This document shows, piece after piece, positions 1,909 to 24,751 of a stretch of DNA of 38,463 bases. How positions within the stretch are numbered: position 1 is the stretch's first letter; each line of letters starts with the position of its first letter. Made by a program: the position numbers and the translations under genes. The stretch lies in NCBI RefSeq assembly GCF_006345805.1, contig NW_021835778.1, positions 1 to 38,463 of the forward strand. Direction: 5' to 3'. Below the pieces are notes generated by a model. It saw only the letters and a program-made list of their open reading frames with translations, was not told the origin of the DNA and made no database searches. The stretch is from Octopus sinensis (Eukaryota).

Positions 1909-1949
1909 GTTGAACGAAATAATTCCCACACTGAATATTAAAACAGTTT

Positions 1950-2312: not shown

Positions 2313-2459
2313 ATGGATTTTCGCACAACTGTCCAGGAATATTTCGCAGCGTTATTCCATTTCTTCTCCTCATAGCTTTTGGGGTTCTTCTCGTTTCTGA
2401 CGATCGTGATTCTTCATCAAGATTCACGAATAGGAAAAATGGAAGAGAAATCGAAAACG
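2313..2459 (+). pseudogene. Copy A exon 1 (membrane anchor exon), frameshifted as assembled
   Basis: Homologous to the intact 144-nt exon 1 of C and D but 147 nt long, with three single-base insertions (atggatttt, ttctcctc, cgtttctg) giving an early TAG. The donor AAAACG|GTAAGT is intact. Confidence 0.75.
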
Positions 2460-2954
2460 GTAAGTCATTGATTTTGTGTTAATATATGTATGTCTTTATG
2501 TATTTATATATGCATGTATGTATGTATGCATTTACGTATGTATGTATTAATATGTGGGTGCATGTACGTACGGATGGATGGATGGATGTAAGGATGTATG
2601 CATGAATCACGTACATATGTTCCTATGGAGCACACACACACACATAAGATCACACACGTAATCACACACGAACACACAGTCGCAAACACATAAATATACA
2701 TATATATACATATAAGCATATTTGTATATATAATATACATATATATGTATATATAAATATACATATATATGAATATATTAGTGCGTGAACATATGTAGAT
2801 ATATATATATACAAACAAATATATGCGTGTGTGTATCTATCACTGTATCTCTATGTCTATCTCTCTCTCTCTCTCTCTGTCTATCTCTCTCTCTCTCTCT
2901 CTCTCTCTATTTATCTATATATATATATGAATGTGTGTGTGTGTGTGTGTATGA

Positions 2955-2985
<31 letters not shown>

Positions 2986-3002
2986 TATATAAATATATTC
3001 TT

Positions 3003-3195
3003 TTACCCGTTTCAGTCATTTGACTGCGGCCATGCTAGAGCACTGCGTTTAGTAGGACGAATCGTTTCAGGAATTATTCTTTGTAAGCCTATTGCTCATT
3101 CTCTCGGTATCTCTAGCCGGACCGCTAAGTAACAGGGACGTAAACACACCGACATCACTTGAGAAGCGATAGTGGTGCGTCAATAACAGACACAC
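3003..3195 (-). mobile_element. 3' part of a tRNA-derived SINE
   Basis: Reverse complement of the 3' half of the full SINE at 29925-30331 (catttgactgcggccatgct, ttattctttgtaagcc, gacgtaaacacacc). Confidence 0.8.
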
Positions 3196-3370
3196 ATGAA
3201 ACATAGATACATACACACTATGTGTGCTATACACACTATGTGTGCTATACACACACACACACACACACATACATCCATATATATATATATATACATATCA
3301 TATATGCATACACACATATATAGTTACGTATGTATGTACATACATATCCATCTATCAATCTATCTATCTC

Positions 3371-3423
<53 letters not shown>

Positions 3424-3942
3424 TATATATATATATATATATATACATATTATATATATATATTATATAAACATATATATATATAATATATATATATATT
3501 ATATATATATATATATATATGTATATGTATATATATTATATATATATATATATACATATACGCACATCCCAAGAAACAAAAGAAGAGTGGAATTGTACTC
3601 CTGTCCGATCGCTCTTTCACCAAACATAATCCTGGAGAGGGAAATAAGTGCGTAATGAAAAAAATCTAATGGTGGGGTTCTAGCATGGCCATGCCCGTCG
3701 CTGCAACGTTTAGCCCTATTAATATTAGTGTTTAAGTATATATTTTAGATGTACACTTACACGCACGCACAGAAACAGACACATACAAACACACACACAC
3801 GCACACATAGGAATACGTACATATTTACACACATTTATCTATTTCTCTCCATCAGGAACGGAAGTGAGGCGAGTTTTTTTGAATCTTTTCTTTCCAACTG
3901 AAAATAAAACGTGCGAGTGCCAATGTAGATCGGTGAATTTCG

Positions 3943-4662
<720 letters not shown>

Positions 4663-4667
4663 TGAGA

Positions 4668-4742
<75 letters not shown>

Positions 4743-4754
4743 CATGTCTGTGTG

Positions 4755-5005
4755 GGAGGCGCAGTGGCCCAGTGATTAGGGCAGCGGACTCACGGTTCGA
4801 TTCCCAGACTGGGCGTTGTGTGTGTTTAAAGCTCCATGATCACTGCTGTACTCTTTCGGTATAACTTTCTCCCTTTCTTCTGTTGGCCTGCTCGCTTAGC
4901 CAACGGGGTGGCGTCATTTGAAGCCTAAAACAATGCGAAGCGAATTGTGACCAGCGATGTGTAGCAACAACCGATAGCCTGGTCTGTAACGGTGATCACG
5001 GAGAT
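4755..5005 (+). mobile_element. tRNA-derived SINE (second family), internally deleted
   Basis: A-box-like tggcccagtgattag and B-box ggttcgattccc. The paralogous copy is at 24816-25090. Confidence 0.75.
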
Positions 5006-5400
5006 GTATGTATCATACGCACACAATACACGCACACACACATACACAAATACAAACAAAACACACACACGATACATATACATACACGCACGCACACACA
5101 TACATCAAACTAGCAGTACCTACTACTTGACCTGTGGTAGAGACAAAAGGAGCCACGCCCAATTCTTTCTTCCTTGACCTTAACACTACTAACCCTACAA
5201 CACGCAAAGATTAACAGCCACAACCACACACACACACGTGTCATCATTGCACACATACACATACACGCACACAAGCACACGCAGTCCTCCGCGCCCGCAC
5301 ATATCCACACTTACACACACATTCCTCATCCTCTTTCAAGGAACCACTCTCCTGATTTGAAAGAACTTTTCTTCACCCATTTCCTTCCGGTCATTCAAAA

Positions 5401-5575
5401 TGTGGCCGCGTGTGTACCGTTGGCGATTTTTTTCCCTCTGGCTTCCCTCCTCTGGATCTTTCTTTCTCATAAATGTTAAACCCTCCTTCTTTCCTTCCTC
5501 GTCCAATAATACTATATTTGTTGCACGTCCTCGCGTTGTTTTTTGTGCCTTCTTGTATGGATTAAATTTAACTAT
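5401..5575 (+). mobile_element. Penelope-like pLTR-type repeat, hammerhead core deleted
   Basis: Same family as 12505-12716 and 26160-26372 (ccgttggcgatt...gtccaataa...ttggattaa then (TA)n), but it lacks the ctgacgaagagc...gaaa segment. Confidence 0.6.
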
Positions 5576-5590
5576 ATATATAAATATGTG

Positions 5591-5623
<33 letters not shown>

Positions 5624-5678
5624 GAGTGCGTGTGTGTGTAGAGATATGTGTGTGTATATATGTGTGTGTGTGTGTGTA

Positions 5679-6310
5679 CTAGCAGACATACCCGGCATTG
5701 CTGGGGATTAAAATGGCAAAGTTGGTATATAATATATTCCAGTCATTTTGAAACAGGTGATATGGGAAAGTGCAACACTGACAACAAAACATTTGTAGAG
5801 TAAATGCTGGGCTAATTCGACTAAGCAACATGCTATGCGTCCGTTTGGAGTGTTTCAGGCCCTAACCTGTCATGCAAAATTGGAGGTGGGGTTTGTGTGA
5901 TTTTTGAACGCACCAAAAAGCTGTCAGTGGATATACTCTCCTTTGCCAGCAGTGTGCGCTGTGTCTAACACGACCCATCATCGGAAATTTTGACACCTCA
6001 CGTCGGGTTGTTTCCTACATCACTCATAGAGCAAATTTGAGGAACTGTGGTTGTTCATTCGCGGGTACCAGAGAACCAATGAGGGATAGACTTGCCCTTG
6101 AACTTTGACGTCGGCTAAATTCATTTTACTATCTTCTTAGATTCACCAAACGATTCATTTGAAATGCATATTTGTATTGTCTGATATTGTTCAGAAAATC
6201 CTTTGACTGGATTGAAGCACCTTCTAGAAATTCCTAAAGGGTTGAGATGGTATTGCCGGCAATGAAACTGTCCGAATATGTTGTCATCTATTGCATTGTT
6301 TTAAGTTCTA
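5679..6310 (-). mobile_element. Helitron remnant: RepHel N-terminal fragment plus 3' hairpin and CTAG terminus
   Basis: On the minus strand: hairpin cccagcaatgccggg, then CTAG|T at 5682-5678. The paralogous copy C segment translates as FLNDIRQYNSAFQMTSFG...FTPT, which I recognise as the Helitron N-terminal region. Confidence 0.75.
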
Positions 6311-6368
6311 AACGATAATAAATACCCTGAAGTTCTATTTATATGATCCTATTTCTATTTTTTCACAG

Positions 6369-6420
6369 AACCGTTTCATCTCCAAGAATCTCTCGACGAT
6401 AAACCCGATGACACACCCAA
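6369..6420 (+). CDS. Copy A exon 2 (stalk), with compensating -1/+1 indels relative to copy C
   Basis: tttcacag|AACCGTTTC...CCCAA|gtaaga, 52 nt, phase 0 to 1. Reads NRFISKNLSTINPMTHP versus NRFISKKSLDDKPDDTP in C. Confidence 0.7.
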
Positions 6421-6654
6421 GTAAGAAATAATTTATGGCTAAAGTCTTTTACCCGTGTCTCCTTAACCAATGATTTATAATTTCACCAACTTTGAATTAG
6501 TTCCACATTACTATCCAAATGTCCACAATAATATATACTAAGACACTGCCTGAATTTCTTTCGAAATATATTCTACTTTACAATAATTTCCTAATAAAAT
6601 GTTACTCTAATATACTATGCCATTTATTGAGTGTATATGAGTATATATGCAGTA

Positions 6655-8490
6655 CTACGTCGAGAATTGTTTCGGTCTGCACGGTTCCTCCGAGTGTGCT
6701 CTTCGTCGAGTGTCCGAGGCAGCCGGTACGTTCACTGTGAACAAATTAGAGTGCTCAGAGCCAGCCCCACCGGCTTGCAAACGAAAAGCATGGAATGCCC
6801 TCTTCATCTGAGAATCAAATGCCTGAGCTGGCGCTTCACTGCGTTTATATCTACAATTCAGCATTCTGTCCACTCTTGTGCTTCCAATCATTCGTGAATA
6901 GAGACCCGAAATAATGATGTTCCACTTTCCTACACAGTGCGTATTTGTCAATCCTGCCTTGGGGTACTCGGCAGCCAACCAATTCAGTGCACGTTGTTGG
7001 TGACCATCAGACGAATCAGGTAGCAGCATGTCGTCTACAAATAACAGTCCACCGATCACGTAGAGATGAATTGGGATACCTCTACCACAATGGCTGAGCA
7101 TATTCAACCAGATCACAAAAAAGAATGTGAGAAGGGGCACTAACAATGCACACTTCAACTAAGTGAAACCTTCACGTTGAAAACTTTCGACTTTTACATA
7201 AATACAAACATTTGAACATCCATATAAGTACTTTATGGCAACCAGTGTTTCCCATTAAACTCACCTTCCTGGCAAACAATCCACAACATGCCCCAGGGCA
7301 CGGGATCGTGTGCATTTTCGCAGTTTACAGCGTATAAACCTTGGAAATATATCAATGGTTGCTGGAAGATCTGTCTCTGAATCACTCTCTGGTCGGGTGT
7401 ACTGCGTCCCGGACAGTAATCTTGGGCACGAAAATGTCCCTACATATCTTTTCCTGACATCTAGGGTAGACATTTCTATAATTAGAACACACTCTTTGGT
7501 CTCTGTTTGAAAAGATTGTGACTCTCACCCCTTATTATCGTTGCCTTGGTGTTTTTTCCAGAGTTCCCATCCACCTAGCATACATGGGTCACTTAGAGAA
7601 TACCATTTGTATTTAAGGTTTCTAAAATATCAAGCCGAACGTGCTTTTCACCAGCAGTTTTATCACTTTTAACTGAATTGAGCTCAAATAAGCGTTCAAC
7701 CGAAGAAGAACCTGCCGAAAAAATTAATACAATCACGAATGTATTTCGATGTCCAAGTTCATTCAGGCGGGTCACTCCCAATTTGGATGCAAATGTCTCC
7801 ACATTTCTGCTTCTGATCCCAGCATCCACTGCGGCTTCCAACTGTATTCTGTAGGTCGCACTGGACTTACCAATTTCCAGTGTTCGGTAGACTGTAGGAA
7901 TTTTCAGGTTTTCAGCCATTTAGGTTGTGACGAGTTGACAACTCCACCCCTTCCTTTTACCCGAACGTTCAGCAAAGAGTGAAAGATGACCGAACTCTAT
8001 CACAAACCTCTGTCACCAAGAATTTCTATACCAGGAACCCTTATAAATATCCCTGTTTTAAAATAATATCTATACCATAGAGTGGAGAGTGTGTATTTTG
8101 CACAGAAGGCTGCTATGACCTCTCCATTAAGTTCACTGACGACATTCCTTCCAATCAATCCTTCTCACGGTTATCAGTGCCAAGGTGTGCACTGAAGTCT
8201 CCTTGCAGGACAAATGACTTTACCCCAAATATATCTAAAGCTGAGGTGAATTTGCTTAGGATTGATTTGTATTTGACCTCGGTGTTTGCTGCATATACAT
8301 ACAGTACGCTAAGGGCTCCAAGGAATAGCCATACCGCGTCATCCATCGAGTGGGATAAAAGCCATTGTGTCTGGGTCTTGAGTGGAGGAGTCCATTCGGG
8401 AAATATATTGCAGTCTCCACCCAACTCAATCTGAGATGCATGGGGAGGGAATACAAAATATGCGTCTTCCAAACCCCGAAGCAGGTCCAG
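6655..8490 (-). mobile_element. Degenerate RTE-clade LINE (endonuclease and reverse transcriptase remnants)
   Basis: Minus-strand fragments VLYVYAANT...VLQGDFSAHLG (APE), KSDKTAGEKHVRLDILETLNTNGIL (RT N-terminus) and LLFVDD (RT active-site remnant). Many stops and frameshifts. Confidence 0.85.
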
Positions 8491-8499
8491 AAGGGATCA

Positions 8500-9015
8500 A
8501 CCGTTCATAATTGAGAATTAGACTGTCAAAACCTGACGATACAAAATGCTCCCTATTGTATATAATCGGTGTCTCCTCAAGAAATCTTCATTATTTCGGA
8601 GGCGTACACTTGGAAGTAGGTTGGAAACTCCACCGTGCAGGTGTGGTGCCAACTATGTCTGCATAGGCGGAAGTGGGATGCTCACAATCCCTGGCTTTCG
8701 GATTGGATTATGGAGTGAATCCCACTAGGTATTAAGGGATACCTCCTGAAGCTCAAGCAGAATGAAGGAGTGGTGTAGCTGCAGGAAGTAAATGCATCCA
8801 ATAGCGAGGGCAAATACAAATGCTTCCTTAACAAAGTCACTGCAGCTTTGGATATATTTGGGGTAAAGTCATTTGTCTTACGGGGAGACTTCCGTGCACA
8901 CTTTGGCGCTGATAACCGCAAGAAGTATTGATTGTGTGGAATGGCGTCACACCTTAATGGAGTGGCCATACTAGTCTTCTGGCAGGAAACGGACTCTCTT
9001 CGCGCCAAACACCAA
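8500..9015 (+). mobile_element. Inverted RTE endonuclease fragment, head-to-head with the minus-strand LINE
   Basis: Plus-strand KVTAALDIFGVKSFVLRGDFRAHFGADNR, and GWKLYRAG...SAQAEVG in the paralogous copies. 8787-8975 is a diverged reverse complement of 8110-8300. Confidence 0.8.
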
Positions 9016-9833
9016 GCTGCTATCTGTAATTGACCAATCAGGTACCAAGAATTGATAATATCGCCTACTTATCTATAAAAGAAGAACATTATCATTATTA
9101 TGGTCACAAACATATCTCTTATTATAAAAGTAAGATTTTCTCTGGTTTTCTCCTGCTATTACCACCACACTTTCTCCTACTTTCTCTTAGCAAGTGTGAA
9201 ACTATTAAAGTGAAAGTATTCCCTTATCATGTGTGTGTGTCTGTGTGTGTGCGTATTAGCAATTCGTATAAAATTGCATCAATGCCTTGAACTTGAATAA
9301 GTGGTTTCACATAAATGGGGATAAATTAAAAAAGTTTGTTGTTATTATTATCACGTTTGTTGGTTCCGCGTCAGGGAAACGTCGTTGTGTTGCATTTGTT
9401 AAATAATTGTAAACCGTACCTCTCCCCCTTTCGGAGAAGGGGCTCTGGTTATTGTTTAAAAATTGAATTGTGTCCCTGTTTGGGAAATTGACAATATTTT
9501 CGCCGTCTTTACGGAAGCATTTTTGTTAAAATGCCTTCGATAGAAGAAAGTCCAAAAATGAATTTCGCTGCAGCCGTACACTTCTATACAAGAGGAGGTC
9601 AAGATCCAATTGATCGAAATTGCAAGAGATGGGCCTACAATTCCAGTCTGTTATATATTTTGAGTAGTATTATCACTAGCGATATCACGATATAACTTTG
9701 TATTTTGTATCTTATGTGTAGATGTATATATATATAGATGTACATGTAATATGTACACATATATATACACATATATACGTGCATAATATATCTACCCATA
9801 CACACACACGCACACACACACACACATACATAG

Positions 9834-9890
9834 GGGCAGGTGTGGCTGTGTGGTAAAAAAATAGCTTCCAAACACATGGTCCTGGGTTCA
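9834..9890 (+). mobile_element. 5' fragment of a tRNA-derived SINE
   Basis: ggggcaggtgtggctgtgtggtaa...cacatggtcctgggttca matches the head of the SINE at 29925. Confidence 0.6.
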
Positions 9891-9932
9891 TGTACATATA
9901 TACAAACATACATCCACACATACATACATGTG

Positions 9933-9967
<35 letters not shown>

Positions 9968-9985
9968 ATTAATGTGTGTGTGTTA

Positions 9986-10376
9986 TCTCTCTTTATATAA
10001 AGCTGAAATGGTCTGTGTGCGCCAGGTTTAGTAACCTTTAACAAACACTATCTCCTCCGAGACCCTGCGGCGCAAGTTGACCAAAATTGAGAGCATGATA
10101 GAAGAAAGGTTGCTCTTCCCTCCGTAGCAGATAATTTCAAATCGGACCATGTTAACACCAAAAATTTTTTACATCAACAAGGTGCTTTTTTCTATGAAAA
10201 TCCCTATTTTTTCACGATTTTTTCACTGCTGTGTCGCCACTTTTCGGCGTATTTCAACCAGAAAAATATTTACTTGAAGAGAATAACAAGCTACATAATG
10301 CAAAATATTTACTTTTCAAAAATTCCAATTCCAGCGGGTCGAAACAAACCCGAGAGACGCCGGGCGATACTGCTAG
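9986..10376 (+). mobile_element. Short non-autonomous Helitron, apparently complete, specific to copy A
   Basis: A|TC start at 9985/9986, subterminal imperfect hairpin cccgagagacgccggg, CTAG|T end at 10373-10377. Absent at the orthologous site in B and C. Confidence 0.7.
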
Positions 10377-10721
10377 TATATATATATATATACTCACATC
10401 CAAGTTCAACTACAAAACAAACGTCCGTTCTTAAGGGAGCCAAATACACATTCTGTTATTCTGAGATTAATCTCTCAATTCGTTGACATCAACGTCAACA
10501 ACAGGCTCAATAGACAAATGACTAATTTTCTTCGTTTAAAATTTATTCTTAACGAATCATTTACTTCTTTCATTCTGATTTTCATTCATTCACTCATTCT
10601 TTTTCTCGTAAATTCTAAATTTCTCTCCTCTCTATCAATTCCTTCCAAGCCAACAACTTCCTTTGTATAGGATTCAAGAATTCTTTCTTTTAAACTAAGT
10701 TGTTTCATTTTAATTTCACAG

Positions 10722-10796
10722 AACCCGGTCCCGGATCATTGTATACCCGATGGGGCAGAACTACTTGTCCTCCTTATTCAAACCTTGTATATGACG
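10722..10796 (+). CDS. Copy A exon 3 (start of the short-chain-collagen C4-like domain)
   Basis: tttcacag|AACCC...GACG|gttagt, 75 nt, phase 1-1. Reads (K)PGPGSLYTRWGRTTCPPYSNLVYD(G). Confidence 0.9.
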
Positions 10797-11479
10797 GTTA
10801 GTACAAACTACACTTCTGTCCTCTCTTTCTCTCTTTCTCTTTCTCTTCTTCTCTTTTTATTCTTCTCATTTTCTCTTTGTGTTACCCCCTCTCTTTCCGT
10901 TTCTCTCACGCACACGCACGCACGCACACTCAAGCAAATCATGTGATATATCACGTTTCAAACGATACCTATAGACCCTATAGAGACTGCACAAGACTGC
11001 TTACTCCTTTGTAAGTATTTGGTCAAATCAGAATTCAAATGTGGTCTAATATGGACCAGGTGAAAAGGATGTTGTCTAACCACAGAATATAGATATCTCT
11101 ACGTTAAATTATAGATAGGGACTACAGTGGAATCCAGTGTAGCGATCAAGGACTCCTGGCTGACTTGTATGGAGTGTAGATATCAAATACCGAGGCTGCT
11201 AACTGGTGATCAAGTGTACTGGATACGGATGGTGGTATTGTACGTGAGTGACCAGAGCTGAAAGTGGCCACTTGACTATCATTAACTAGAGTGTCTATTG
11301 AATGTCGTTATAGACTAAATTGAACAAGGTCTCTTAGAACTGATGAATGAATGTATATGGTTAATGAAATGAATGCAGAATGTACAATGTGGACTGGACA
11401 AACCACACACTGTAACTAATGGACAAAGCTAACTAAGGGCCGTATGTATTATGCAAAATATTGAGGGACCAAGTACCAC

Positions 11480-11800
11480 TGTGTGAACCCAAGTTAGTAC
11501 ATATTGCACTTCTATTCTTCTCCGCCTTACCGAAATCGTCCTATCCCTTAAACCTTTCTGTTTTCATGCGCCACCTCGCCTCATTAATTGTCCAGTATAT
11601 CTTTGTAAGGTAACGCCGGCACATCCAATTCAAAGCTACTGCTTCCCACATCTTCTCCAACCAACCTCGCAACCTTTGTGAATCTGCTCTCTATAAACCC
11701 TATACGTAACCTTTATCGGTCGCCCACTCCGCTCTCCATTCTTCTTAAGCACTACGCTATCAATGAGCTTCAAAATTCACTCCACCTCAGTTCATGCTTT
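11480..11800 (-). mobile_element. Probable RTE LINE 3' remnant in intron 3
   Basis: Minus-strand tggatgtgccggcgttaccttacaa gives WMCGVTLQ with one indel, resembling the RTE C-terminal region. Also present near 17550-17900 and 31500-31820. Confidence 0.4.
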
Positions 11801-12205
11801 GCATGAAATAAAATCTGTGTGATCATAATATCATAGTATGTGGTAGGCCCGTTTTGTGGTAGGCCTGACTCGTACGAGACAAACCGATGGATATAGCCAG
11901 CCACGCACTTATGGTCGGCTAAACAGTATTTCATCCCCTCTTACCCACCAGTTCTCTGCATCTCGCCGTCTCTCGTATTGTTCTACTCAAACCACATGCA
12001 ATTCCGATCACCAACAATTTTCCCGTTTAAACGTAAACGACATCTTTTCAATTTCGGGAAATCACGACCACATGCGTCACAAAATCCCTTTCCTTTCTCC
12101 GTTTATTGACATCCACACACAAACATCTACTCCAAGCAATACACATCTCAACCACAAATACTTACCCGTACACACACAAACACACACATAGACACACACA
12201 CACAT

Positions 12206-12237
<32 letters not shown>

Positions 12238-12349
12238 GCAGGTACACAAACACGCAGACACACGCATACATTCACACATACGCAAACACACATACACACA
12301 CAAACACAGATATCCACAACAAACACACACACAGACACACACACACATG

Positions 12350-12380
<31 letters not shown>

Positions 12381-12504
12381 GCAGGTACACAAACACACAG
12401 ACACACGCATACATTCACACATACGCAAACACACAGACACACACAAACACAGACATACACACACAAACACAAAAAACACACGCAAATACACACACACATA
12501 CCAA

Positions 12505-12709
12505 CCTGTGACCGCCAGTTTACCGTTGGCGATTATTTCCCTCCGTTTTCCCTTCTTTGGATCTTTCCTTTTCCTATTATTCTGACGAAGAGCTCCGCTC
12601 GAAACTTTAATCCCTCATTCTTTCCTTCTTTCATGGGCGTCCAATAACACTATACTTGTTCCACGTCCTCGCAATGTTGTGTTTTCTCTTTGTGTTTTTA
12701 TGCTTGGAT

Positions 12710-12716
<7 letters not shown>
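12505..12716 (+). mobile_element. Penelope-like pLTR-type repeat with a degenerate minimal hammerhead motif
   Basis: tatt CTGACGA A GAGC tcc GCTC GAAA cttt aat at 12578-12611. The element ends at a (TA)n tract. Confidence 0.65.
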
Positions 12717-12764
<48 letters not shown>

Positions 12765-12982
12765 GAACAGAGAGAGAAAGGCACAGCTGCGAACGCATGC
12801 GCACTCCCATACAGCAACACACAGCTTACACTCATATAAACACTAACACATACACCACAATTCGTTCACACGTGACTAAACATGACTTCTTTTAAGGGTC
12901 AAACTGTAATGAATGTTTCCGTTATTTCAGATATAATTTTGCTTCCTATCATTTTTACTTGATTTATTCTTACCAATTCTAG

Positions 12983-13482
12983 GTGTGGCTGGTGAACAAT
13001 TTTATGACCACTCAGGTGGCGGAAGTAATCTCTTATGTCTACCCAACGACCCCATTTGGGCCAATTATACTTCAAAAGTTGAAGATGTGGGTTCCATTTA
13101 TGGTACTGAATATCAATCACACGCATACGGCACCAATACCATGTTTTCCTTTGCTAACGCTAAATCACTTAAAGATCACAACGTTCCGTGCGCTGTCTGT
13201 TTGACACGACAACCTGCTGTTGTTATGATGTTACCAGCCAGGACAAAGTGCTACGCTGGTTGGACAGCTGAGTATTCAGGATATTTGATGTCCAATTATC
13301 ACGGACAGAAGGGCAGACAAGAATATGTGTGTGTGGATTATGCACCAGAAGCTGATCCAGCAGGTTACAGAAAGGAAGATGGAGCTCTATTATATTTCGT
13401 TCAGGCTGCTTGTGTTTCATTGCCATGTCCACCGTATGTCCATGGTCAAGAATTAACCTGCGTTGTTTGCAGTAAATATTGA
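12983..13482 (+). CDS. Copy A exon 4, short-chain collagen C4 (spongin NC1-like) domain, terminal coding exon
   Basis: ttctag|GT GTG GCT; open 165 codons to TGA. Motifs GGGSNLLCLP, HNVPCAVC, CYAGWTAEYSGYLM, YVCVD, LPCPPY, ELTCVVCSK. Confidence 0.93.
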
Positions 13483-13592
13483 ATAGAAATTAAATTCGGT
13501 TCCATATGAAAATATCTCTGTGAATAACAAGAAATAACATAAAATTTTAATTGTGTTACCTAATATTTTCTTTAAAGTATGTCTATCATTAC

Positions 13593-13598
13593 AATAAA
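13593..13598 (+). promoter_or_regulatory. Candidate polyadenylation signal AATAAA for copy A
   Basis: About 110 nt after the stop codon and conserved in copy C (33432-33437). Confidence 0.5.
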
Positions 13599-14200
13599 CT
13601 GTTGTACTAGTTTACAGAAGATATTCAAACAATACAAAAGAGGCGACCTAGAATGCCAGAAATATCCTCAAAAACAAGAAAAATCTAAATCTATCGAAAT
13701 GATTCTAGAAAACATTTTGTAAGATTTCAGTTTATCAAACTTATCGTTGAAATAAAATGTTATTTTGTTTAACAGTATTTTGTCTTCTGTCTCATGATTC
13801 AACAAACCCCAAATAAAGTACCACCATAGAATTATATCAGCTTTTCATGCACAGCCTTAGAAAATCTAATACTCGACGCTGCTATCTCAGACATCTTGGT
13901 TTTCAAATTACAAATTGGATTCTGACAAGGACCCATGAACCGCTACATTACATAGCACAGAACTTAACTGATTCTTTCAACAACAATCCATTCTATTTTA
14001 TAAAACCTATTTATCGTCTACTTTAGAAATATCACAAAATGTTCAATTTAAGCTTTCTGAGAATGTGGAATTTACACGATCAATCCATCAAAAGACAGTA
14101 TTAATGAGTATTGGTCCTGCCAACCTAAATCAATATCACAAAATTCCCACCTCTCTTCAAAATAAGATACAAAATGAAACTCGATGCCCACAACATACAG

Positions 14201-15850
14201 GTTTATATCTACAATTCAACATTCTGTCCACTCTTGTGCTTCCAATCATTCGTGAATAGAGACCCGAAATAATGATGTTTCACTTTCCTACACAGTGCGT
14301 ATTTGTCAATCTTGCCTTGGGGTACTCGTCAGCCAACCAATTCAGTGCACGTTTTTGGTGACCATCAGACGAATCAGGTAGCAGGATGCCGTCTACAAAT
14401 AACAGTCGACCGATCACGTAGAGATGAATTGGGTAACCTCTACCACAATGGCTGCGCATATTCAACCAGATCACAAAAAAGAATGTGAGAAGGGGCACTA
14501 ATAATGCACACTTCAACTAAGTGAAACCTTCACGTTGAAAACTTTCGACTTTTACATAAATACAAACATTTGAACATCCACATATGTACTTTATGGCAAC
14601 CAGTATTTGCACATTAAACTCACCTTCCTGGTAAACCATGCACAGCATGCCCCAGGGCACGTGACCGTGTGCCTTTTCGTGGTTTACAGCGTATATACCT
14701 TGGAAATATTTCAATGTTTGCTGGAAGATCTGTCTTTGAATGACTCTCTGGTCGGGTGTACTGCGTCCCGGACAGTAATCTTGGGCACGACAATTTTCTC
14801 ACATATCTTCTCCTGACATCTAGTGTAGACTTTTCTATAATTAGAACTCACTTATTGGTCTCTGTTTGAAAACATTGTAATTGTCACCCCATATTACCAT
14901 TGCCTCAGTGTTTTTTCCAGAGGTCCTATCCACCTAGCGTACATGGGTCACTCAGAGAATACCATCTGTATTTAAGGTTTCTAAAATATCAAGCCGAACG
15001 TGCTTTTCACTTGCAGTTTTATCACTTTTAAGTGAATTTAGCTCATATAAGCGTTCAACCGAAGAAGAACCTGCCCAAAAAATTAATACAATCACGAATG
15101 TATTTCGATGTCCAAGTTCATTCAGGCGGGTCACTCTCAATTTGGATGCAAAAGTCTCCACATTTTTGTTTCTGATCCCAGCATCCACTGCGGCTTCCAA
15201 CTGTATTCTGTAGGTCGCACTGGACTTACCAATTTCCAGTGTTCGGCAGACTGTAGGAATTTTCAGGTTTTCAGACATTTAGGTTGTGATGAGTTGACAA
15301 CTCCACCCCTCCTTTTACCCGATCGTTCAAAAAAGAGTGAAAGATAACCGAAATCTTTCACAAACCTCTGTCACCAAGTATGTCTATACCAGGCACCCTT
15401 ATAAATATCCCTGTCTTAAAATAATATCTATACCATAGAGAGGAGAGTGTGCATCCTACACAGAAGGCTGCTATGACCTCTCCATTAAGTTCACTGACGA
15501 CATTCCTTCCAATCAATCCTTCTCACGGTTATCAATGCCAATGTGTGCACTGAAGTCTCCTTGCAGGACAACTGACTCACCCCAAATATATCTAAATCTG
15601 AGATGAATTTGCTTAGGATTGATTTGTATTTGAACTCGGTGTTTGCTGCATATACATACAGTACGCTAAGGGCTCCAAGGAATAGCCATACCGCGTCGTC
15701 CATCGAGTGGGATAAAAACCGTTGCGTCTGGATCTTAGGTGGAGGAGTCCATTCGGGAAATATATTGCAGTCTCCACCCAACTCAATCTGAGATGCATGG
15801 GGATGGAATACAAAATATGCATCTTCCAAACCCCGAAGCAGGTCCAGAAG
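14201..15850 (-). mobile_element. Degenerate RTE LINE (paralog of 6843-8490)
   Basis: LLFVDG, KSDKTASEKHVRLDILETLNTDGIL and VLYVYAANT fragments. Confidence 0.85.
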
Positions 15851-15859
15851 GGATCAACC

Positions 15860-16375
15860 GTTCATAATTGAGAATTAGACTGTCAAAACCTGACGATACA
15901 AAACGCTGCCTATTGTATATAATCGGTGTCTCCTCAAGAAATCTTCATTATTTCGGAGGCGTACACTCGGAAGTAGGTTGGAAACTCCACCGTGCAGGTG
16001 TGGTGCCAACTATGTCAGCACAGGCGGAAGTGGGATGCTCACAATCCCTAGCTTTCGGATTGGATTATGGAGTGAATCCCACTAGGTATTAAGGGATACC
16101 TCCTGAAGCTCAAGCAGAATGAAGGAGCGGTGTAGCTGCTGAAAGCAAATGCATACAATAGCGAGGGCAAATACAAATGCTTCCTTAACAAAGTCACTGC
16201 AGCGTTGGATATATTTGGGGTAAAGTCATTTGTCTTACAAGGAGACTTCCGTGCACACTTAGGCGCTGATAACCGCAAGAAGTATTGATTGGGTGGAATG
16301 GCGTCACACAACTTTATGGGGTGGCCATACTAGTCTTCTGGCAGAAAACGGACTCTCTTCGCGCCAAACACCAAG
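15860..16375 (+). mobile_element. Inverted RTE endonuclease fragment (paralog of 8500-9015)
   Basis: EVGWKLHRAGVVPTMSAQAEVG, and gatatatttggggtaaagtcatttgtcttacaaggagacttcc. Confidence 0.8.
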
Positions 16376-16812
16376 CTGATATTGTTAATTGACCAATCAG
16401 GTGCCAATAATTGATAATATGGCCTACATATCTATAAAAGAAGAACTTTATCATTATTATGGTCACAAATATATATATATATACTCACATCCAAGTTCAA
16501 CTACAAAACAAACATCCGTTCTTAAGGGAAACAAATACACATTCTTATATTCTGAGATTAATCTCTCAATTCGTTGACATCAACATCAACAACAGGCTCA
16601 ATAGACAAATGACTAATTTTCTTCGTTTAAAATTTATTCTTAGCGAATCCTTTACATCTTTCGTTCTTATTTTCATTCATTCACTCATTCTTTTTCTCTT
16701 AAATTCTAAATTTCTCTCCTCTCTATCAATTCCTTCCAAGACAACAACTTCCTTTGTATAGGGTTCAAGAATTCTTTCTTTTAAACTACATTGTTTCATT
16801 TTAATTTCACAG

Positions 16813-16887
16813 AACCTGGTCCCGGATCATTGTATACCCGGTGGGGCAGAACTACTTGTCCTACTAATTCAAGCCTTGTATATGACG
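16813..16887 (+). CDS. Copy B exon 3, intact
   Basis: tttcacag|AACCT...GACG|gttagt, 75 nt. Reads PGPGSLYTRWGRTTCPTNSSLVYD. Confidence 0.85.
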
Positions 16888-18286
16888 GTTAGTATAAGCT
16901 ATACTTCTGTTCTCTCTTTCTCTCTTTATCTTTCTCTTCTTCTCTTTTTATTCCTCTCATTTTCTCTTTCTGTCGCCCCTCTCTTTCCGTTTCTCTCACG
17001 CACACGCACACACACGCAAGCAAATCATGTGACATATCACGTTTGTAACGTTACCTATAGACCCTATAGAGACTGCACAAGATTGCTTACTCCTTTGTAG
17101 GTGTTTGGTCAAATCAGACTTTAAATGTTGTCTAATATGGACCAGGTGAAAAGAATGTTGTCTAACCACAGAATATAGATATCTCTACGTGAAATTATAG
17201 ATAGGGACTAGAGTGGAATCCAGTATTGCGATCAAGGACTCCTGACTGACTTGTATGGAGTGTAGATATCAAATACCGAGTCTGCTAACTGGTGATCAAG
17301 TGTACTGGCTACGGATGGTGGCATTGTATGTGAGTGACCAGAGCTGAGATGTGGCTACTTGACTATCATCAACTAGAGTGTCTATTGATTGTCGTTATAA
17401 ATTAAATTGAACAAGGTCTCTTAGAATTGATGAATAAATGTATATGGTTAATGAAATGAACACAGAATGTACAATGTGGACTGGACAGACCACACACTGT
17501 AACTAATGGACAAAGATAATTAAGCACCGTATGTATTATGCAAAATGTGGAGGGACCAAGTACCACTGAGAGTACATATTGCACCCAAGTGAGTACATAC
17601 TGCACTTCTATTCTACTCCGCCTTACCGAAATCGTCCTATCCCTCAAACCTTTCTGTTTTCATCCGCCACCTCGCCTCATTAATTGTCCAGTATATCTTT
17701 GTAAGGTATCGCCGGCACATACAATTCAAAGCTACTGCTTTCCACATCTTCTCCAACCGACGTCGCATCCTTTGTGAATCTGCTCTCTATAAACCCTATA
17801 CGTAACCTTTATCGGTCGCCCACTCTGCTCTCCATTCTTCTTAAGCACTACGCCATCAATGAGCTTCAAAATTCACCACACTTCAGTTCATGCTTTGCAT
17901 GAAATAAAATCTGTGTGATCATAATATTATAGTATGTGGTAGGCCCGTCTCGTGGTAGGCCTGACTCGTACGAGACAAACCGATGGATATAGCTAGCCAC
18001 ACCCGTATGGTCGGCTAAACAGTATTTCATCCACTCTTACCCACCAGTTCTCTGCATCTCGCCGTCTCTCGTATTGTTCTACTCAAACCACATGCAATTC
18101 CGATCACCAACAATTTTCCCGTTCAAACGTGAACGACATCTTTTCCATGTCGGGAAATTACGACCACATGCGTCACAAAATCCCTTTCCTTTCTCCGTTT
18201 ATTGACATTCACACACCCCATGCAATACACATCACCCCATGCAATACACATCACAACCACAAATACTGACTCGTAAACACACACAA

Positions 18287-18333
<47 letters not shown>

Positions 18334-18391
18334 ACATTATTGGTGAATTGAAGAAATGGAGCTGAACGCAGATTGAACAGAAATCGTTTTA

Positions 18392-18481
18392 TTTCATTCT
18401 ACACGTGTTTCGAAAGGCACAAATTACCAAAATCCGATTGAATAATGGGACCATATTGTGTCTTTCTCTTCAGGAAGAAAA
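18392..18481 (-). ncRNA. Type I hammerhead ribozyme motif (left arm of the palindrome)
   Basis: Minus strand: ttttcttc CTGAAGA gaaag...ctttc GAAA c acgt g TA gaatgaaa. Intact core, G-C closed helix II, palindromic loop 3 and a GUA triplet. Confidence 0.75.
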
Positions 18482-18632
18482 AAGGAAATCCGTTGGAAAA
18501 ACAAAAACAGAACAGAGGCAGAGCAAAAAACAAATCGAACTGTGCTCCTAAGAGCCCATGGCTCTTAGGAGCACAGTTTTTGATTTTTTTGCTCTGCCTC
18601 TGTTCTGTTTTTGTTTTTTCCACGGATTTCCT

Positions 18633-18721
18633 TTTTTCTCCTGAAGAGAAAGACACAATATGGTCCCATTATTCAATCGGATTTTGGTAATTTGTGCTTT
18701 CGAAACACGTGTAGAATGAAA
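18633..18721 (+). ncRNA. Type I hammerhead ribozyme motif (right arm of the palindrome)
   Basis: CTGAAGA 18641-18647, gaaag/ctttc helix II, GAAA 18702-18705, cacgtg, GTA 18711-18713. Helix I is weaker than in the left arm because of a 1-nt deletion. Confidence 0.7.
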
Positions 18722-18968
18722 TAAAACGATTTCTGTTCAATCTGCGTTCAGCTCCATTTCTTCAATTCACCAATAATGTTTTAATTTCAATTATCCGCAC
18801 CAACGCACGGTTGCAACGCCAGATGGTTGTACCTCCAACCGTGCTGTTCACTGCTGTGATTTTTGCTACTAAGGTATCGGTTAAACTTTTGATTAATCTA
18901 CTACAAGATTATTCATCTTTCTATTTCACATAATATATATATATATATATATATATATTCATTTAAAT

Positions 18969-19176
18969 TGTGACCGCCTGAGTAACGTTGGCGATTTTTT
19001 TCCTTCCGTTTACCCTTCTTTGGATCTTTCCTTTTCTTATGATTCTGACGAAGAGCTCCGCTCGAAACGATAAACCCTCATTCTTTCCTTCTTTCATGGG
19101 CGTCCAATAACACTATAGTTGTTCCAAGTCCTCGCAATATTGTGTTTTCTTTTTGTGTTTTTATGCTTGGATTAAC

Positions 19177-19178
<2 letters not shown>
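18969..19178 (+). mobile_element. Penelope-like pLTR-type repeat with a degenerate minimal hammerhead motif
   Basis: gatt CTGACGA A GAGC tcc GCTC GAAA cgat aaac at 19041-19075. Ortholog of 12505-12716. Confidence 0.65.
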
Positions 19179-19216
<38 letters not shown>

Positions 19217-19432
19217 GAACAGAGAGAGAAAGGCACAACTGCGAACATATGCGCACTCCCATACACCAACACACAGCTTACACTCATATAAACACTAACA
19301 TATACACCACAATTCGTTCACACGTGACTAAACATGACTCCTTTTAAGGGTCAAACTGTAATGAATGTTTCCGTTATTTCATATATAATTTTGCTTAATA
19401 TCTTTTACTTGATTTATTCTTACCAATTCTAG

Positions 19433-19932
19433 GTGTGGCTGGTGGACAATGGTACGACCACACAGGTGGCGGAAGTAATCTCTTATGTCTACCTAACGAT
19501 CCCATTTGGGCCAATTATACTACAAAAGTTGAAGAAGGTGGTCACATTTATGGCAGTGAATATCAACTACAGGATTACGACACCAATACCATCTTTTCTT
19601 TTGCTAACGCTAAATCACTTCATGATCACAACGTTCCGTGCGCTGTCTGTTTGACACGACAACCTGCTGTTGTTATGACGTTACCAGCCAGAACACAGTG
19701 TTACGCTGGTTGGACGGCTGAGTATTCAGGAAATTTGATGTCCGAACGTCATACACATAAGGGCAGACTTGAATATGTGTGTGTGGACTATGCACCAGAA
19801 GCTGATCCAGCAGGTTACCGAAATGAAAATGGAGCTGTATTATATTTCGTTCAGGCTGCTTGTGGTTCATTGCCATGTCCACCGTATGTCAATGGTCAAG
19901 AATTAACCTGCGTTGTATGCAGTAAATATTGA
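19433..19932 (+). CDS. Copy B exon 4, short-chain collagen C4-like domain, intact
   Basis: ttctag acceptor and 165 open codons. About 84% amino-acid identity to A and about 89% to C by hand count. Confidence 0.9.
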
Positions 19933-19961
19933 ACAGAAATTAAATTCGGTTCCATATGAAA

Positions 19962-19992
<31 letters not shown>

Positions 19993-20057
19993 TGTATGTA
20001 TGTATGTATGTATGTATGTATGTATGTATGTATGTATGTGTGTAAGCATGTATGTAT

Positions 20058-20613
20058 GTCAGGTCACTTTCGTGTGCTACTGGTAACATGTAACCCAGGA
20101 CAACCTGTTGCATTGTTGGGTCGTCGGCGACTAAACCGGCAACCCCACCAAGCTTGCTTGGTGAGGAGGGTGTTTATTGGACACCCTGCGGGATGAAAAA
20201 CAAAACCCGTCAAAGAGCGGAGGAACTCTTGAGAGTCAACGGCCATCCAATAACTGTCTTAAGGCTGTATCATGCGCGGGGACACAGAAATAATCGGACT
20301 GAATATCCGATCGCGCGGTTAAACCATTGGGAGTGAAGGACTCCTAGCCTTTGTCAGGGTATCATTCTAGGAGAGGGTAACTCAGGTAACTGGGATAACT
20401 CCGATATAAAACCTGCGGCTCAGTGGTTACCGATGATGTTGACTTGTTCTTCTTTTCGGATTATGGCTGCTGATGCTTAGTGAGTGGGATTGACTCAGTG
20501 CACAGCCTTTCCTCGCTTTAAAAAAATTCTTCATGCACAGGCATTGCACGATAACAATATTGATTAAGCACCGTGCAATGCCCATACTCGATAACGAGGG
20601 AGCAGCCACCAAG
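20058..20613 (+). mobile_element. About 555-bp non-coding element embedded in (TATG)n, possibly a non-autonomous RTE derivative
   Basis: A second copy lies at 35648-36205. It has a hairpin-rich 5' part and a 3' end ccatactcgataacgagggagcagccaccaag running into (TATG)n, reminiscent of RTE 3' ends. No useful ORF. Confidence 0.45.
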
Positions 20614-21523
20614 TATGTATGTATGTATGTATGGATGGATGGATGGATGTAAGTATGTGTGTATGTATGTACGTGTGTATGTATGTATGTATGTATGTAT
20701 GTATGTATGTATGTATGTATGTATGTATGTATGTATGTATGTGTATATGTGTCTATCGATGTATACATGCTTACATGCATGCATACATGTATACATACAT
20801 AAATGTATGTATACATATATGCATGCATGTATGTATGAAAGTATGTATGTATGTATGTGTGTGTGTATGTATGTATATATGTAACTATGTGTGTATGTAT
20901 GTGTGTATGTGTGTGTGTATGTATGTATGCATGTGTGTGTATGTATGTATGTATGTATATATATATGTGTGTGTATGTAAGTATATATGTATGTATGGGG
21001 GTATGTATGTATGTATATATGTATGTATATACGTGAGTGTGTATGTATGCATGTATGTATGTATGTATGTGTGTATGTATATATGTATGTATGCATGTAT
21101 GTATGTATGTATGTGTGTATGTATGTATGTATGTATGTATGTATGTATGTATGTATGTATGTGTGTATGTATATATGTATGTATGCATGTATGTATGTAT
21201 GTATGTGTGTATGTATGTATGTATATATGTATGTATGCATGTATGTATGTATGTATGTGTGTATGTATGTATGTATGTATGTATGTATGTATGCATGTAT
21301 GTATGTATGTATGTGTGTATGTATATATGTATGTATGCATGTATGTATGTATGTATGTGTGTATGTATGTATGTATGTATGTATGCATGTATGTATGTAT
21401 GTATGTGTGTATGTATATATGTATGTATGCATGTATGTATGTATTTAAGTGTGTATGTATGTATGTATGTATGTATGTATACCTGTATGTATGTGTGCAT
21501 GTATGTATGTATATATGTATGTA
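20614..21523. repeat. (TATG)n compound microsatellite, about 900 bp
   Basis: Directly visible. It is the source of the 379-aa and 304-aa pseudo-ORFs. Confidence 0.97.
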
Positions 21524-22499
21524 TTAGTGGGTGGGAATTGGTAGGTTTTGAATTTGATATTCCCATAAAACTTTTCTAATCCGATTAACGCTTGTTGTGA
21601 AGAATCCAATCCGAACAGCGGACTTCATTAGATTAAGTCTTGCGATTACTGTGTGGGTTGAACGAAATACTTCCCACTCTGGATATTAAAACAGTGTGTG
21701 AGTGTGTGTGTGTGTGTGTGTTTGTGAGTGAGTGTGTGTGTCAATTTTTGTATGTGTGTGTGCCAGTGTGTGTGCGTGTGTGTGTGTGTTAGTGTGTGTG
21801 TATGTGTGTCTAAGTGTGTGTCTGTGTGTATGTGTCACTGTGTGTGTCGGTGTGTGTTTGTGTGTTTGTCAGTGTTTGCGTCTGTGTGTGTCAGTGTGTG
21901 TGTGTGTGTGTTAGTGTGTGTGTCAGTGTGTGTGTGTGTCAGTGTGTGTGTGTGTGTGTTAGTGTGTGTGTCAGCGTGTGTGTTTGTCATTGTGTGTGTT
22001 TGTTAGTGTGTGTGTGTGTGTGTCAGTGTGTGTGTGTGTCTCAGTGTGTGTGTGTGTGTGTGTGTGTCTTTGTGTCTGTGTATTTGTTGGTTGAACGAAA
22101 TACTTCCCACACTGAATATTAAAACAGTTTCCCAAGAATAACAAATAAAATTAAATAACAACATTAGTAAATAAATATATCATAATATACCCAGAAACAG
22201 GAATCATTTCACTTTACACGTGTCTCTCATTCATCAAAATATTTTGCTAATTATTGTGTGACTATATCAAACCATCTCTTTCCAATAATTAAACCTGTCA
22301 GACAAGTTCACACCCGCTTTTACAGTTCCACCAATCGCATTGTTTCATAAATTTACGATAAGATCTATGCCAGAGCTGGGTTGTTGTGCGCTCAATAAAT
22401 ACGTGGAATTCAGTTACAGGTCTTCAGCTTAAACCTCGCATCTCGATCTTTTTTTGAAGCCACACGAAGTATCACTTACGACCGACAACTGTCACCAGA

Positions 22500-22643
22500 A
22501 TGGATTTCGCACAACTGTCCAGGAATATTTCGCAGCGTTATTCCATTTCTTCTCTCATAGCTTTTGGGGTTCTTCTCGTTCTGACGATCGTGATTCTTCA
22601 TCAAGATTCTAGAATAGGAAAAATGGAAGAGAAATCGAAAACG
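22500..22643 (+). CDS. Copy C exon 1, intact; signal-anchor/transmembrane exon
   Basis: MDFAQLSRNISQRYSISSLIAFGVLLVLTIVILHQDSRIGKMEEKSKT, 144 nt, donor ACG|GTAAGT. Confidence 0.88.
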
Positions 22644-23127
22644 GTAAGTCATGGATTTTGTGTTAATATATGTATGTCTTTATGTATTTATAAATGCATG
22701 TATGAATGCATTAACGTATGTATGTATTAATATGTGGATGTACGTACGTACGGATGGATGGATGGATGAATGTAAGGATGTATGCATGAATCACTTACAT
22801 ATGTTCCTATGGAGCACACACACACACATAAGATCACACACGTAATCACACACGAACACACAGGCGCACACACTAAACATACAAAGATATACATATACAT
22901 ATATTTGTATATATAATATACATATATATGTATATATAAATATACATATTTATGAATATATTAGTGCGTGAACATATATAGATATATATATATAAACAAA
23001 TATATGCGTGTGTGTATCTATCACTGTATCTCTCTGTCTCTCTTTCTCTCTTTCTCTCTATTTATCTATATATATATATATGTATGTATGTGTGTGTGTG
23101 TGTGTATGTGTGTATAAATATATCCTT

Positions 23128-23318
23128 TAACCGTTTCAGGCATTTGACTGCGGCCATGCTAGAGCACTGCATTTAGTAGGACAAATCGACTTCAGGAATT
23201 ATTCTTTGTAAGCCTATTGCTCATTCTATCGTTATCTCTAGCCGAACCGCTAAGTAACGAGGACGTAAACATACCGACATCAGTTGAGAATCGATAGTGG
23301 TGCGACAATAACAGACAC
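23128..23318 (-). mobile_element. 3' part of a tRNA-derived SINE (ortholog of 3003-3195)
   Basis: catttgactgcggccatgct...ttattctttgtaagcc. Confidence 0.8.
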
Positions 23319-23512
23319 ATATATTAAACAGAGATACAAACACACTATGTCTGCTATACACACACACATACATCTATATATACATATATATACATATCAT
23401 ATATACATACACACATATATAGTTACGTATGTATGTACATACATATCTATCTATCAATCTATTTATCTATCTATCTATCTATCTATATATATATATATTT
23501 ATCTATGTATCA

Positions 23513-23558
<46 letters not shown>

Positions 23559-23583
23559 GTATATATATATATATATATTATAT

Positions 23584-23681
<98 letters not shown>

Positions 23682-24410
23682 GTATGTATGTATATATACA
23701 TATACACACATCCCAAGGAAACACAAAGAATAGTGGAATTGTACTCCTGTCCGATCGCTCTTTCACCAGACATAATCCTGGAGAGGGAAATAAGTGCGTA
23801 ATGAAAAAAATCTAATGGTGGGGTTCTAGCATGGCCATGCCCTGTCGCTGCAACGTTTAGCCCTATTAATATTAGTGTTAAGTATTATATCTAGATGTAC
23901 ACTTACACACACGCACAGAAACAGACACATACAAACACACACACACACGCACACATAGGAATACGTACATATTTACACACATTTATCTATTTCTCTCCAT
24001 CAGGAACGGAAGTGAGGCGAGTTTTTTTGAATCTTTTCTTTCCAACTGAAAATAAAACGTGCGAGTGCCAATGTAGATCGGTGAATTTCGTAATGTTTGA
24101 CTGTAATTCACGTTGGTTTTTATATATGACAATATGTAAGAACGAATGTAAATACATACACACAGACACACGGACAAACAAACGCACAAATAAACACAAA
24201 CACACACACATACGCACGCACACAGACACACGTGCTCAATTGTACACGAACAATCACACTATACAGTGTATGTCCACTCACATATATGTGTGCGTTTGTG
24301 TGTGTGTATGCGTATAAGTAGATACGTGTATTTGTGATATTTATGGTGTGTATGCTTCAGTATACGTGCATACGTATATATTGATGTGTTATATATATAT
24401 ATATATATAT

Positions 24411-24608: not shown

Positions 24609-24656
<48 letters not shown>

Positions 24657-24703: not shown

Positions 24704-24751
<48 letters not shown>

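Follow-up and report, generated by a model that had tools for sequence, protein, structure and literature searches.

A coding exon more diverged than its intron

Why should a coding exon be far more diverged between two tandem gene copies than the intron adjoining it, and why should the copies regroup where the two meet? The question is raised by a 38.5-kb stretch of eukaryotic, AT-rich and microsatellite-laden DNA (contig NW_021835778.1, positions 1 to 38,463; referred to here, at its full length, as the window), which covers a section of a tandem array made up of octopod "short-chain collagen C4-like" genes. Self-comparison of the window revealed a nested tandem array in which three repeated units of about 6–7 kb, A (6797–14199), B (14201–19971) and C (27499–34100), share 90–94% identity and carry exon 3 (75 nucleotides, nt) and exon 4 (500 nt) of a four-exon gene. 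The exon in question is exon 4 of copy A, which starts at 12983 behind a splice acceptor AG at 12981–12982; all exons, introns, tracts and hot spots described here lie on the forward strand. Considered as a whole, the pattern quite probably reflects a mosaic of interlocus gene conversion beside diversity hot spots in exon 4, which is the best of the explanations weighed here.

Site counts were based on a three-way alignment of copies A, B and C. The last 220 columns of intron 3 (12762–12982) held one A–C difference (site 12874) and set B apart by nine substitutions and a 2-bp indel, in agreement with the initial annotation of this DNA, which had counted about one and about ten. In the first 165 nt of exon 4, where that annotation had given about 26 A–C differences (about 16%), 25 were found (15.2%), all of them within 12995–13130 (18%), and the site patterns were now in favor of the other pairing, with 19 sites at which B and C agreed against A, three at which A and C agreed against B and six at which A and B agreed against C. 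The grouping of C with B included synonymous sites in exactly the codons that had been listed (7, 20, 22, 40 and 55). Its return to A, which had been placed in codons 53–107, was borne out over the next 162 nt (A=C at 13 sites, B=C at four, A=B at four), and the 3' untranslated region (UTR), for which A–C divergence of about 5% had been estimated, showed 14 differences in 318 bp (4.4%; 13483–13800). Two statements stood only in narrower form: the grouping does flip, but the position of the flip, originally set at the splice site, is resolved to 12875–12994, i.e. within 120 bp, and homogenization of the intron between A and C applies to the 3' ~1.1 kb of intron 3, the rest being 5–12% diverged.

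The homogenized part corresponds to a putative recent A–C conversion tract at 11910–12994, with about 1.3% substitution divergence and a 3' end lying between 12874 and 12995. It contains about 12 substitutions together with microsatellites that differ in length by 149 bp and 13 bp, and against a background of 6–10% its flanks show about 8% divergence just upstream and 15–18% downstream. It is followed directly by a segment (12995–13171) in which A stands apart and C joins B, B and C agreeing at 21 of 30 informative sites.

Tests for recombination and phylogeny

Fisher tests gave p=1e-5 for the contrast of B=C with A=C sites between intron and exon and p=3e-9 for the density of A–C differences. 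A max-chi2 scan with two breakpoints selected 12995–13171, a score reached in none of 2000 permutations, and a 3SEQ-like maximum-descent (random-walk) test run over the whole 7-kb unit returned the same interval (p=0.002). Using the standard mismatch penalty, a GENECONV-like search identified an A–C fragment at 12570–12994 (global p=0.0009) and, adjoining it, a B–C fragment at 13001–13172 (pairwise p=0.0007, global p=0.08); elsewhere in the unit, it detected A–C 6807–6889 (p=0.0001) and A–B 8247–8659 (p=0.0017).

For polarization, ten further copies from Octopus vulgaris, O. sinensis and O. bimaculoides (loci L001–L005) were added, giving 13 copies from four genomes. The pairwise homoplasy index (PHI) computed on these was significant in three configurations (p≤0.0002). 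In the maximum likelihood (ML) tree of the intron tail A and C were joined with support of 93/85, and the alternative pairing of B with C was rejected by the approximately unbiased (AU) test (p=0.0008). The derived states that A and C have in common in the intron were absent from the 11 other copies. The patchwork gene conversion inferred in the initial annotation was supported in every substitution-based procedure with power (max-chi2, GENECONV-like, 3SEQ-like, PHI and AU).

A second instance of the flip was found in O. sinensis, where the neighboring copies L002:25272 and L002:47975 are 3.3% apart in the intron tail and 13.9% apart in exon nt 1–165. These two copies, a pair picked after inspection of the trees, are sisters in the intron (96/89), and the exon data reject them as a pair (AU p=0.0017).

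Hot spots and exchangeable cassettes in exon 4

Across the 13 copies, exon-4 nucleotide diversity peaked at codons ~4–10, 30–37, 44–53 and 100–112, reaching 0.3–0.43 compared with 0.01–0.1 in the framework. The first hot spot, HV0 (codons 4–10; 12994–13014), has a nucleotide diversity of 0.41 and codes for a predicted loop; HV1 (13072–13143) comprises the peaks at codons 30–37 and 44–53 with a conserved IYGxEY block between them; and HV2 (codons 100–112; 13282–13320) is the same in A and C and very different in B. In the AlphaFold2 model described below, to which secondary structure was assigned with DSSP, all four hot spots are centered on predicted loops between strands. In all copies they exceed the intron and the remaining exon in divergence by a factor of 3–4, and among the seven closest copies mean divergence reached 22% and 26% in the main patches, the intron tail and the framework standing at 7.6% and about 6%, respectively. 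An exon more diverged than its intron is therefore a property of the family, concentrated in loop-coding patches. A further O. sinensis exon-4 copy (L002:8564–8947) lacks its 5' part, with homology from codon 38 onward only; this point is inside HV1 and places a rearrangement breakpoint within the variable region.

The excess divergence extends to silent sites. Synonymous divergence (dS) in the hot spots was 0.51 and non-synonymous divergence (dN) 0.36, with a dN/dS ratio (omega) of 0.71 by the Nei–Gojobori method (NG86) and 0.69 by ML (GY94) and an ML tree length of 7.1. The corresponding framework values were dS 0.18, dN 0.054, omega 0.31 by both NG86 and ML, and a tree length of 1.6. Between codon pairs coding for the same amino acid, the proportion of silent differences (pS) was 0.30 inside the hot spots and 0.11–0.19 outside. 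Within codons 1–55, dS was 0.33 for A–C, 0.23 for A–B and 0.05 for B–C (dN about 0.14); A and C, with a silent divergence of 0.33 in this part of the exon, differ by 0.5% in the adjacent intron, and the distance of A from B and C (0.23–0.33) amounts to 2–3 times the non-coding divergence of the unit as a whole. Because divergence is high at silent sites too, the segment carried by A is older than the 6–10% non-coding background. As to its composition, 13 of the 19 states specific to A in exon nt 1–165 recur in other paralogs and six are private to A, which indicates that the segment consists mainly of reshuffled standing variation and not of a burst of new mutations.

The hot spots were also found in different combinations. 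Copy B and the O. sinensis copy L003:34025 (CM016876.1) share a 400-bp tract (19304–19704) with only two mismatches, which starts 130 bp within the intron, crosses the splice junction and takes in HV1, in surroundings that are ~8–14% diverged (intron ~8%). Beyond this tract the HV2 sequences of the two copies are completely different, and HV2 of L003:34025 matches that of an O. vulgaris copy with another HV1. The breakpoints lie in conserved blocks beside the cassettes. The near-identity of the tract suggests that the HV1 haplotype common to B and L003:34025 is either long-lived or recently transferred. Hot-spot cassettes, then, move, or persist, as blocks, each with its conserved flanks. The earlier proposal that diverged exon segments are shuffled or preserved is well matched by these data, since hot spots occur in all copies and HV1 and HV2 have been recombined.

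Interpretation of the mosaic

Of the two processes proposed in the initial annotation, patchwork gene conversion and unequal crossover, it is the first that agrees with the data. The A–C tract is internal, bordered at either end by diverged DNA, and the two copies are 20 kb apart and separated by unit B and block X2, so that non-reciprocal conversion is favored and one unequal crossover is an unlikely source of the tract. The sequence of events is probably as follows. Paralogs would exchange short tracts by non-reciprocal interlocus gene conversion, and one recent tract of ~1.1 kb (11910–12994) would have left the 3' end of intron 3 near-identical in A and C, stopping in the conserved block around the splice acceptor. 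The patches of HV0, HV1 and, further on, HV2 would have a deeper history than the DNA surrounding them, silent sites included, A keeping an older and different haplotype made up mostly of variants found in other paralogs and B and C sharing a common one. Conversion tracts may begin and end in the homology offered by the conserved blocks that flank the hot spots, and the hot spots may escape being overwritten owing to a high mismatch density, selection or both. Relaxed constraint may underlie some of the private changes of A, a possibly defective copy, and it probably contributes to the excess divergence of this copy.

Several results weigh against gene conversion beside the hot spots as the account of the mosaic. 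The strict Sawyer runs test, which allows no mismatch, was only marginal for the focal fragment (global p=0.077). In the 13-taxon tree of exon nt 1–165 the AU test failed to reject the pairing of A with C (p=0.34); 165 nt give low power, and for this reason reliance is placed on the site-pattern tests and on the O. sinensis pair. No donor of A's divergent segment was present among the 13 genomic copies, from which A is 19–40% away in HV1, or among 35 database proteins (best match 71% amino acid (aa) identity). Average omega in the hot spots (0.69–0.71) is below 1, and neither positive selection nor selective maintenance is accordingly demonstrated. In a test of hitch-hiking in an "old island", the conserved codons between the hot spots showed a silent divergence of 0.19 compared with 0.11–0.16 elsewhere, a trend short of significance (p=0.21). 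Finally, private short indels are distributed asymmetrically, with 23 deletions and one insertion in C, three and ten in A, and four and two in B, a difference that is unexpected within one genome and suggests uneven polishing of the assembly.

This last point bears on the first of the rival explanations, an assembly artefact in which the contig path switched between near-identical paralogs, or in which copies were partially collapsed, leaving A or C chimeric at the junction. Tandem repeats of 6–7 kb that are 86–94% identical and rich in microsatellites would invite such errors, and small frameshifting indels are indeed seen in exons 1, 2 and 3. Indel errors, however, do not make substitution mosaics, and collapse or re-use of reads would not yield the ~12 substitutions and the 149-bp and 13-bp microsatellite differences found inside the A–C tract. 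Furthermore, the same flip and the same kind of cassette mosaic recur in loci of the O. sinensis assembly, taken here as independent, and likewise in O. vulgaris, and the breakpoints coincide with the margins of hot spots seen throughout the family instead of being scattered at random. An artefact is for these reasons considered improbable.

About as improbable is the view that copy A is decaying or fast-evolving and has accumulated private point mutations in the 5' part of exon 4 under relaxed constraint or positive selection, exon exchange being absent and the intron being accounted for by one A–C conversion. The gene that feeds A does have an exon 1 interrupted by a stop and a disturbed exon 2, two glycine positions with at least 90% conservation across 54 homologues are altered in A (G→E at codon 4, G→V at codon 144), its unique changes, which include the six private states among the 19 in nt 1–165, are mostly non-synonymous, and the missing donor would fit. 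The 13 states that A has in common with other paralogs or species, synonymous codons 7, 20 and 22 among them, point the other way, as does the clustering of the changes in 12995–13171 in place of a spread over exon and 3' UTR, and the dS of A from B and C is higher than the decay of one copy would explain. The exon frameshifts, for their part, may be assembly errors.

A third account, in which constraint operates without any exchange, the intron tail being a conserved splicing or regulatory element and the hot spots unconstrained loops, would be in keeping with a junction that every copy conserves closely over the final ~30 bp of intron and the opening 15 nt of exon (diversity ~0.05), with the variability of the same loop positions across phyla in the 54-sequence alignment and with an omega below 1, but it is very improbable, as it can explain neither the spatial clustering of incompatible site patterns nor a tripling of silent-site divergence in the hot spots, and pure intron constraint is refuted by the derived intron states that set A and C apart from B and ten other copies. 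The conserved intron tail showed no Rfam or tRNA match as an RNA gene or structured element.

Gene structure

Mapping of full-length relatives onto the window indicated a four-exon gene in which exon 1 codes for a signal anchor, exon 2 for a linker and exons 3 and 4 for an NC1-like domain. Exons 1 and 2 are located in three further blocks, X1 (1–6668), X2 (19963–27491) and X3 (34599 to the end of the window), which were delimited by the same self-comparison and share 86–87% identity; exons 3 and 4 are located in units A, B and C.

The gene that ends in unit A has its signal-anchor exon 1 at 2313–2459, as found by tblastn with the homologue P0016 and by a three-copy alignment of exon 1, and its linker exon 2 at 6369–6420. 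Compared with the copies in X2 and X3, exon 1 has three 1-bp insertions that lead to an in-frame stop, and exon 2 has a −1/+1 indel pair by which the frame is internally shifted and then restored. Exon 3 of copy A (10722–10796) codes for the start of the NC1-like domain (...GSLYTRWGRTTCPPYSNLVYD-G). It is followed by intron 3 (10797–12982, GT...AG), which contains a CA-rich microsatellite (~12204–12500), a dispersed repeat (12507–12713) and a (TA)n run (12714–12761), and of which the last ~160 bp (12822–12982) are comparatively conserved among all copies. Exon 4 (12983–13482) is an intact open reading frame (ORF) of 165 codons plus stop that codes for the bulk of the NC1-like domain, including nine of its ten cysteines, and the 3' UTR (13483–13620) contains AATAAA at 13593–13598.

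Unit B is an extra 3' cassette made up of exon 3 (16813–16887) and an intact exon 4 (19433–19932), with exons 1 and 2 of its own absent and a truncated 3' UTR, of which only the first ~34 nt are common with A before a (TATG)n repeat begins. The gene ending in unit C has an intact exon 1 (22500–22643; 48 of 48 aa identical to O. vulgaris P0016), exon 2 at 27191–27242, an exon 3 (30739–30811) with a 2-bp deletion relative to A and B that shifts the frame, and an intact exon 4 (32822–33321). Exon 1 of the next gene of the array is at 37612–37755, the remainder lying past the window. The frame-disrupting indels in these otherwise near-identical exons (exons 1 and 2 of the first gene and exon 3 of C) are to be read either as marks of young pseudogenes or as consensus indel errors. 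In O. sinensis, NCBI gene models at L002 and L003 extend over 38–40 kb and skip several exon 3–4 cassettes, so that 3' cassettes of the array may be used alternatively, or the models themselves may be chimeric.

A predicted NC1-like fold in a collagen-less protein

Relatives that are ~80% identical to the 165-codon ORF behind the acceptor are the "short-chain collagen C4-like" proteins of O. sinensis and O. vulgaris, and remoter ones were found in other molluscs, annelids, cnidarians and amphioxus. Many stand-alone NC1-like homologues of 155–190 aa were also seen on unannotated ENA/JGI metagenome contigs, some of them hundreds of kb long (e.g. P0072, P0077, P0080 and P0094); this could mean that the domain occurs widely beyond annotated animals, or else that the contigs are invertebrate DNA lacking annotation.

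The octopus domain is of ~190 aa and has ten cysteines, one in exon 3 and nine in exon 4; across 54 homologues seven cysteines were invariant and two nearly so. The NC1 domain of spongin also has ten, seven common with collagen IV and three of its own (PMC5395295), so that the octopus number fits by count. An AlphaFold2 model was built for P0016, which is 78% identical and gapless in exon 4, with the 54-sequence alignment as input, giving a mean predicted local distance difference test (pLDDT) score of 84. When this model was compared with the PDB using Foldseek, ranks 1–35 were all collagen IV NC1 chains (best E=4e-5, probability 0.99), with a global template modeling (TM) score of only ~0.2. 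Pfam gave no match for the exon-4 products of the window or for P0016, and the collagen IV C4 domain (PF01413) was not matched in any of the 54 homologues; phmmer and a family-profile hmmsearch against PDB sequences likewise found no NC1 chain. It is thus the fold search that provides the link to NC1, the Pfam, phmmer and profile searches having given nothing relevant.

No Gly-X-Y runs of at least four triplets were present in any frame of the window, and a classification of these genes as collagens in the strict sense was rejected on the grounds of their absence. The collagen repeat domain PF01391 was detected in seven of the 54 aligned relatives, none of them from octopus. On the basis of the predicted fold, the octopus proteins are best described as NC1-only, signal-anchored relatives of the spongin short-chain collagens and not as collagens. 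The one functional clue that turned up is a peptide of an O. vulgaris family member identified in the ink proteome (PMC10142993), and a literature search found no description of the octopus NC1-only array or of its hypervariable loops.

Array layout and repeats

With the loci sampled from O. vulgaris and O. sinensis the window shares 88–93% identity, without a clear ortholog; the 400-bp near-match between copy B and an O. sinensis copy suggests that the window derives from O. sinensis/O. vulgaris or a very close relative. Very long compound microsatellites, CATA/TATG- and CA-rich, occupy 600–2000, 12100–12500, 20400–22100, 25000–26000 and 35200–37300, and their extreme strand skew gives rise to dozens of spurious ORFs of 100–380 aa (such as MHTYIHTY... 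and MYVCMYVC...). The ~200-bp dispersed repeat ending in (TA)n that is seen in intron 3 of copy A (12507–12713) recurs at 5401–5625, 18969–19175, 26159–26418 and 32365–32560, that is, in intron 3 of all three units and also upstream of exon 2 in X blocks (70–79% identity). It showed no Rfam or tRNA similarity and may be a short non-autonomous element.

Larger inverted structures were also present. A palindrome of ~450 bp that is 95% self-complementary (18330–18783) occurs in intron 3 of unit B only, another (82%) lies at 3937–4668 in block X1, and an inverted pair (8085–8294 with 8788–8998, 79%) is found in every unit, adjoining minus-strand ORFs of ~105–110 aa for which there was no Pfam match. 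These large inverted repeats and palindromes may be remnants of transposons.

Comparison with known systems

The mechanism proposed here is a known, textbook one; the mildly novel part is the octopus NC1-only family, which is apparently undescribed. It resembles spongin and collagen IV NC1 in the name given to its nearest annotated relatives, in the cysteine count reported for spongin and in a predicted fold that matches collagen IV NC1 structures, and some non-octopus relatives carry collagen repeats. Whereas the short-chain collagens of spongin have a Gly-X-Y domain N-terminal to NC1, the octopus proteins have a signal anchor and a short linker instead; their genes also differ from both spongin and collagen IV in forming a large tandem array with hypervariable loops, and a match to collagen IV at the sequence level is absent. 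What is new is thus the setting, a family of NC1-only proteins with a signal anchor, related to spongin and collagen IV, that has expanded in octopus and has four hypervariable loops with sharp limits. A practical consequence is that gene trees and orthology calls for this family are unreliable unless they are partitioned by segment.

The initial annotation had likened the locus to diversifying recognition gene families, and the likeness holds in part, as an analogy: variable loop segments exceed the intron in divergence, but a dN/dS above 1 was not found. By the same analogy, the array might be a germline device for combinatorial diversification, in which the loops of membrane-anchored, collagen-less NC1 proteins are kept diverse and recombined as cassettes for recognition or defence, a reading that seems rather doubtful at present; its logic resembles that of plant R-gene clusters, MHC/KIR and venom families, and for the NC1 fold it has not yet been described. 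If the loops were under diversifying selection, the family would be a candidate cephalopod recognition or defence family in which one of the oldest metazoan matrix domains has been repurposed.

Among characterized cases, the tandem L/M opsin genes of primates, studied in gibbons, are comparable in that conversion homogenizes the introns while key exons stay diverged (PMC3213168). In both systems the exon is more diverged than the intron, intron and exon trees disagree, and GENECONV-type tracts are mainly intronic and stop near the differentiated exon parts. The opsins, however, are two genes with few spectral-tuning sites, for which purifying selection against homogenization has been demonstrated, whereas in the octopus array the paralogs are numerous and the four loop-coding hot spots are themselves subject to reassortment, selection on them not being demonstrated.

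Venom gene families, in which exon segments are switched and introns conserved (PMC2474615), provide the other parallel: the fold and the introns are conserved, and short exon segments located on surface loops are radically different between members. The octopus family differs in that there is no evidence of a toxin and average dN/dS is ~0.7 and not above 1. It also differs in that its variable segments move between paralogs as cassettes together with their flanks, which points to ordinary homologous conversion rather than to an unexplained "switch".

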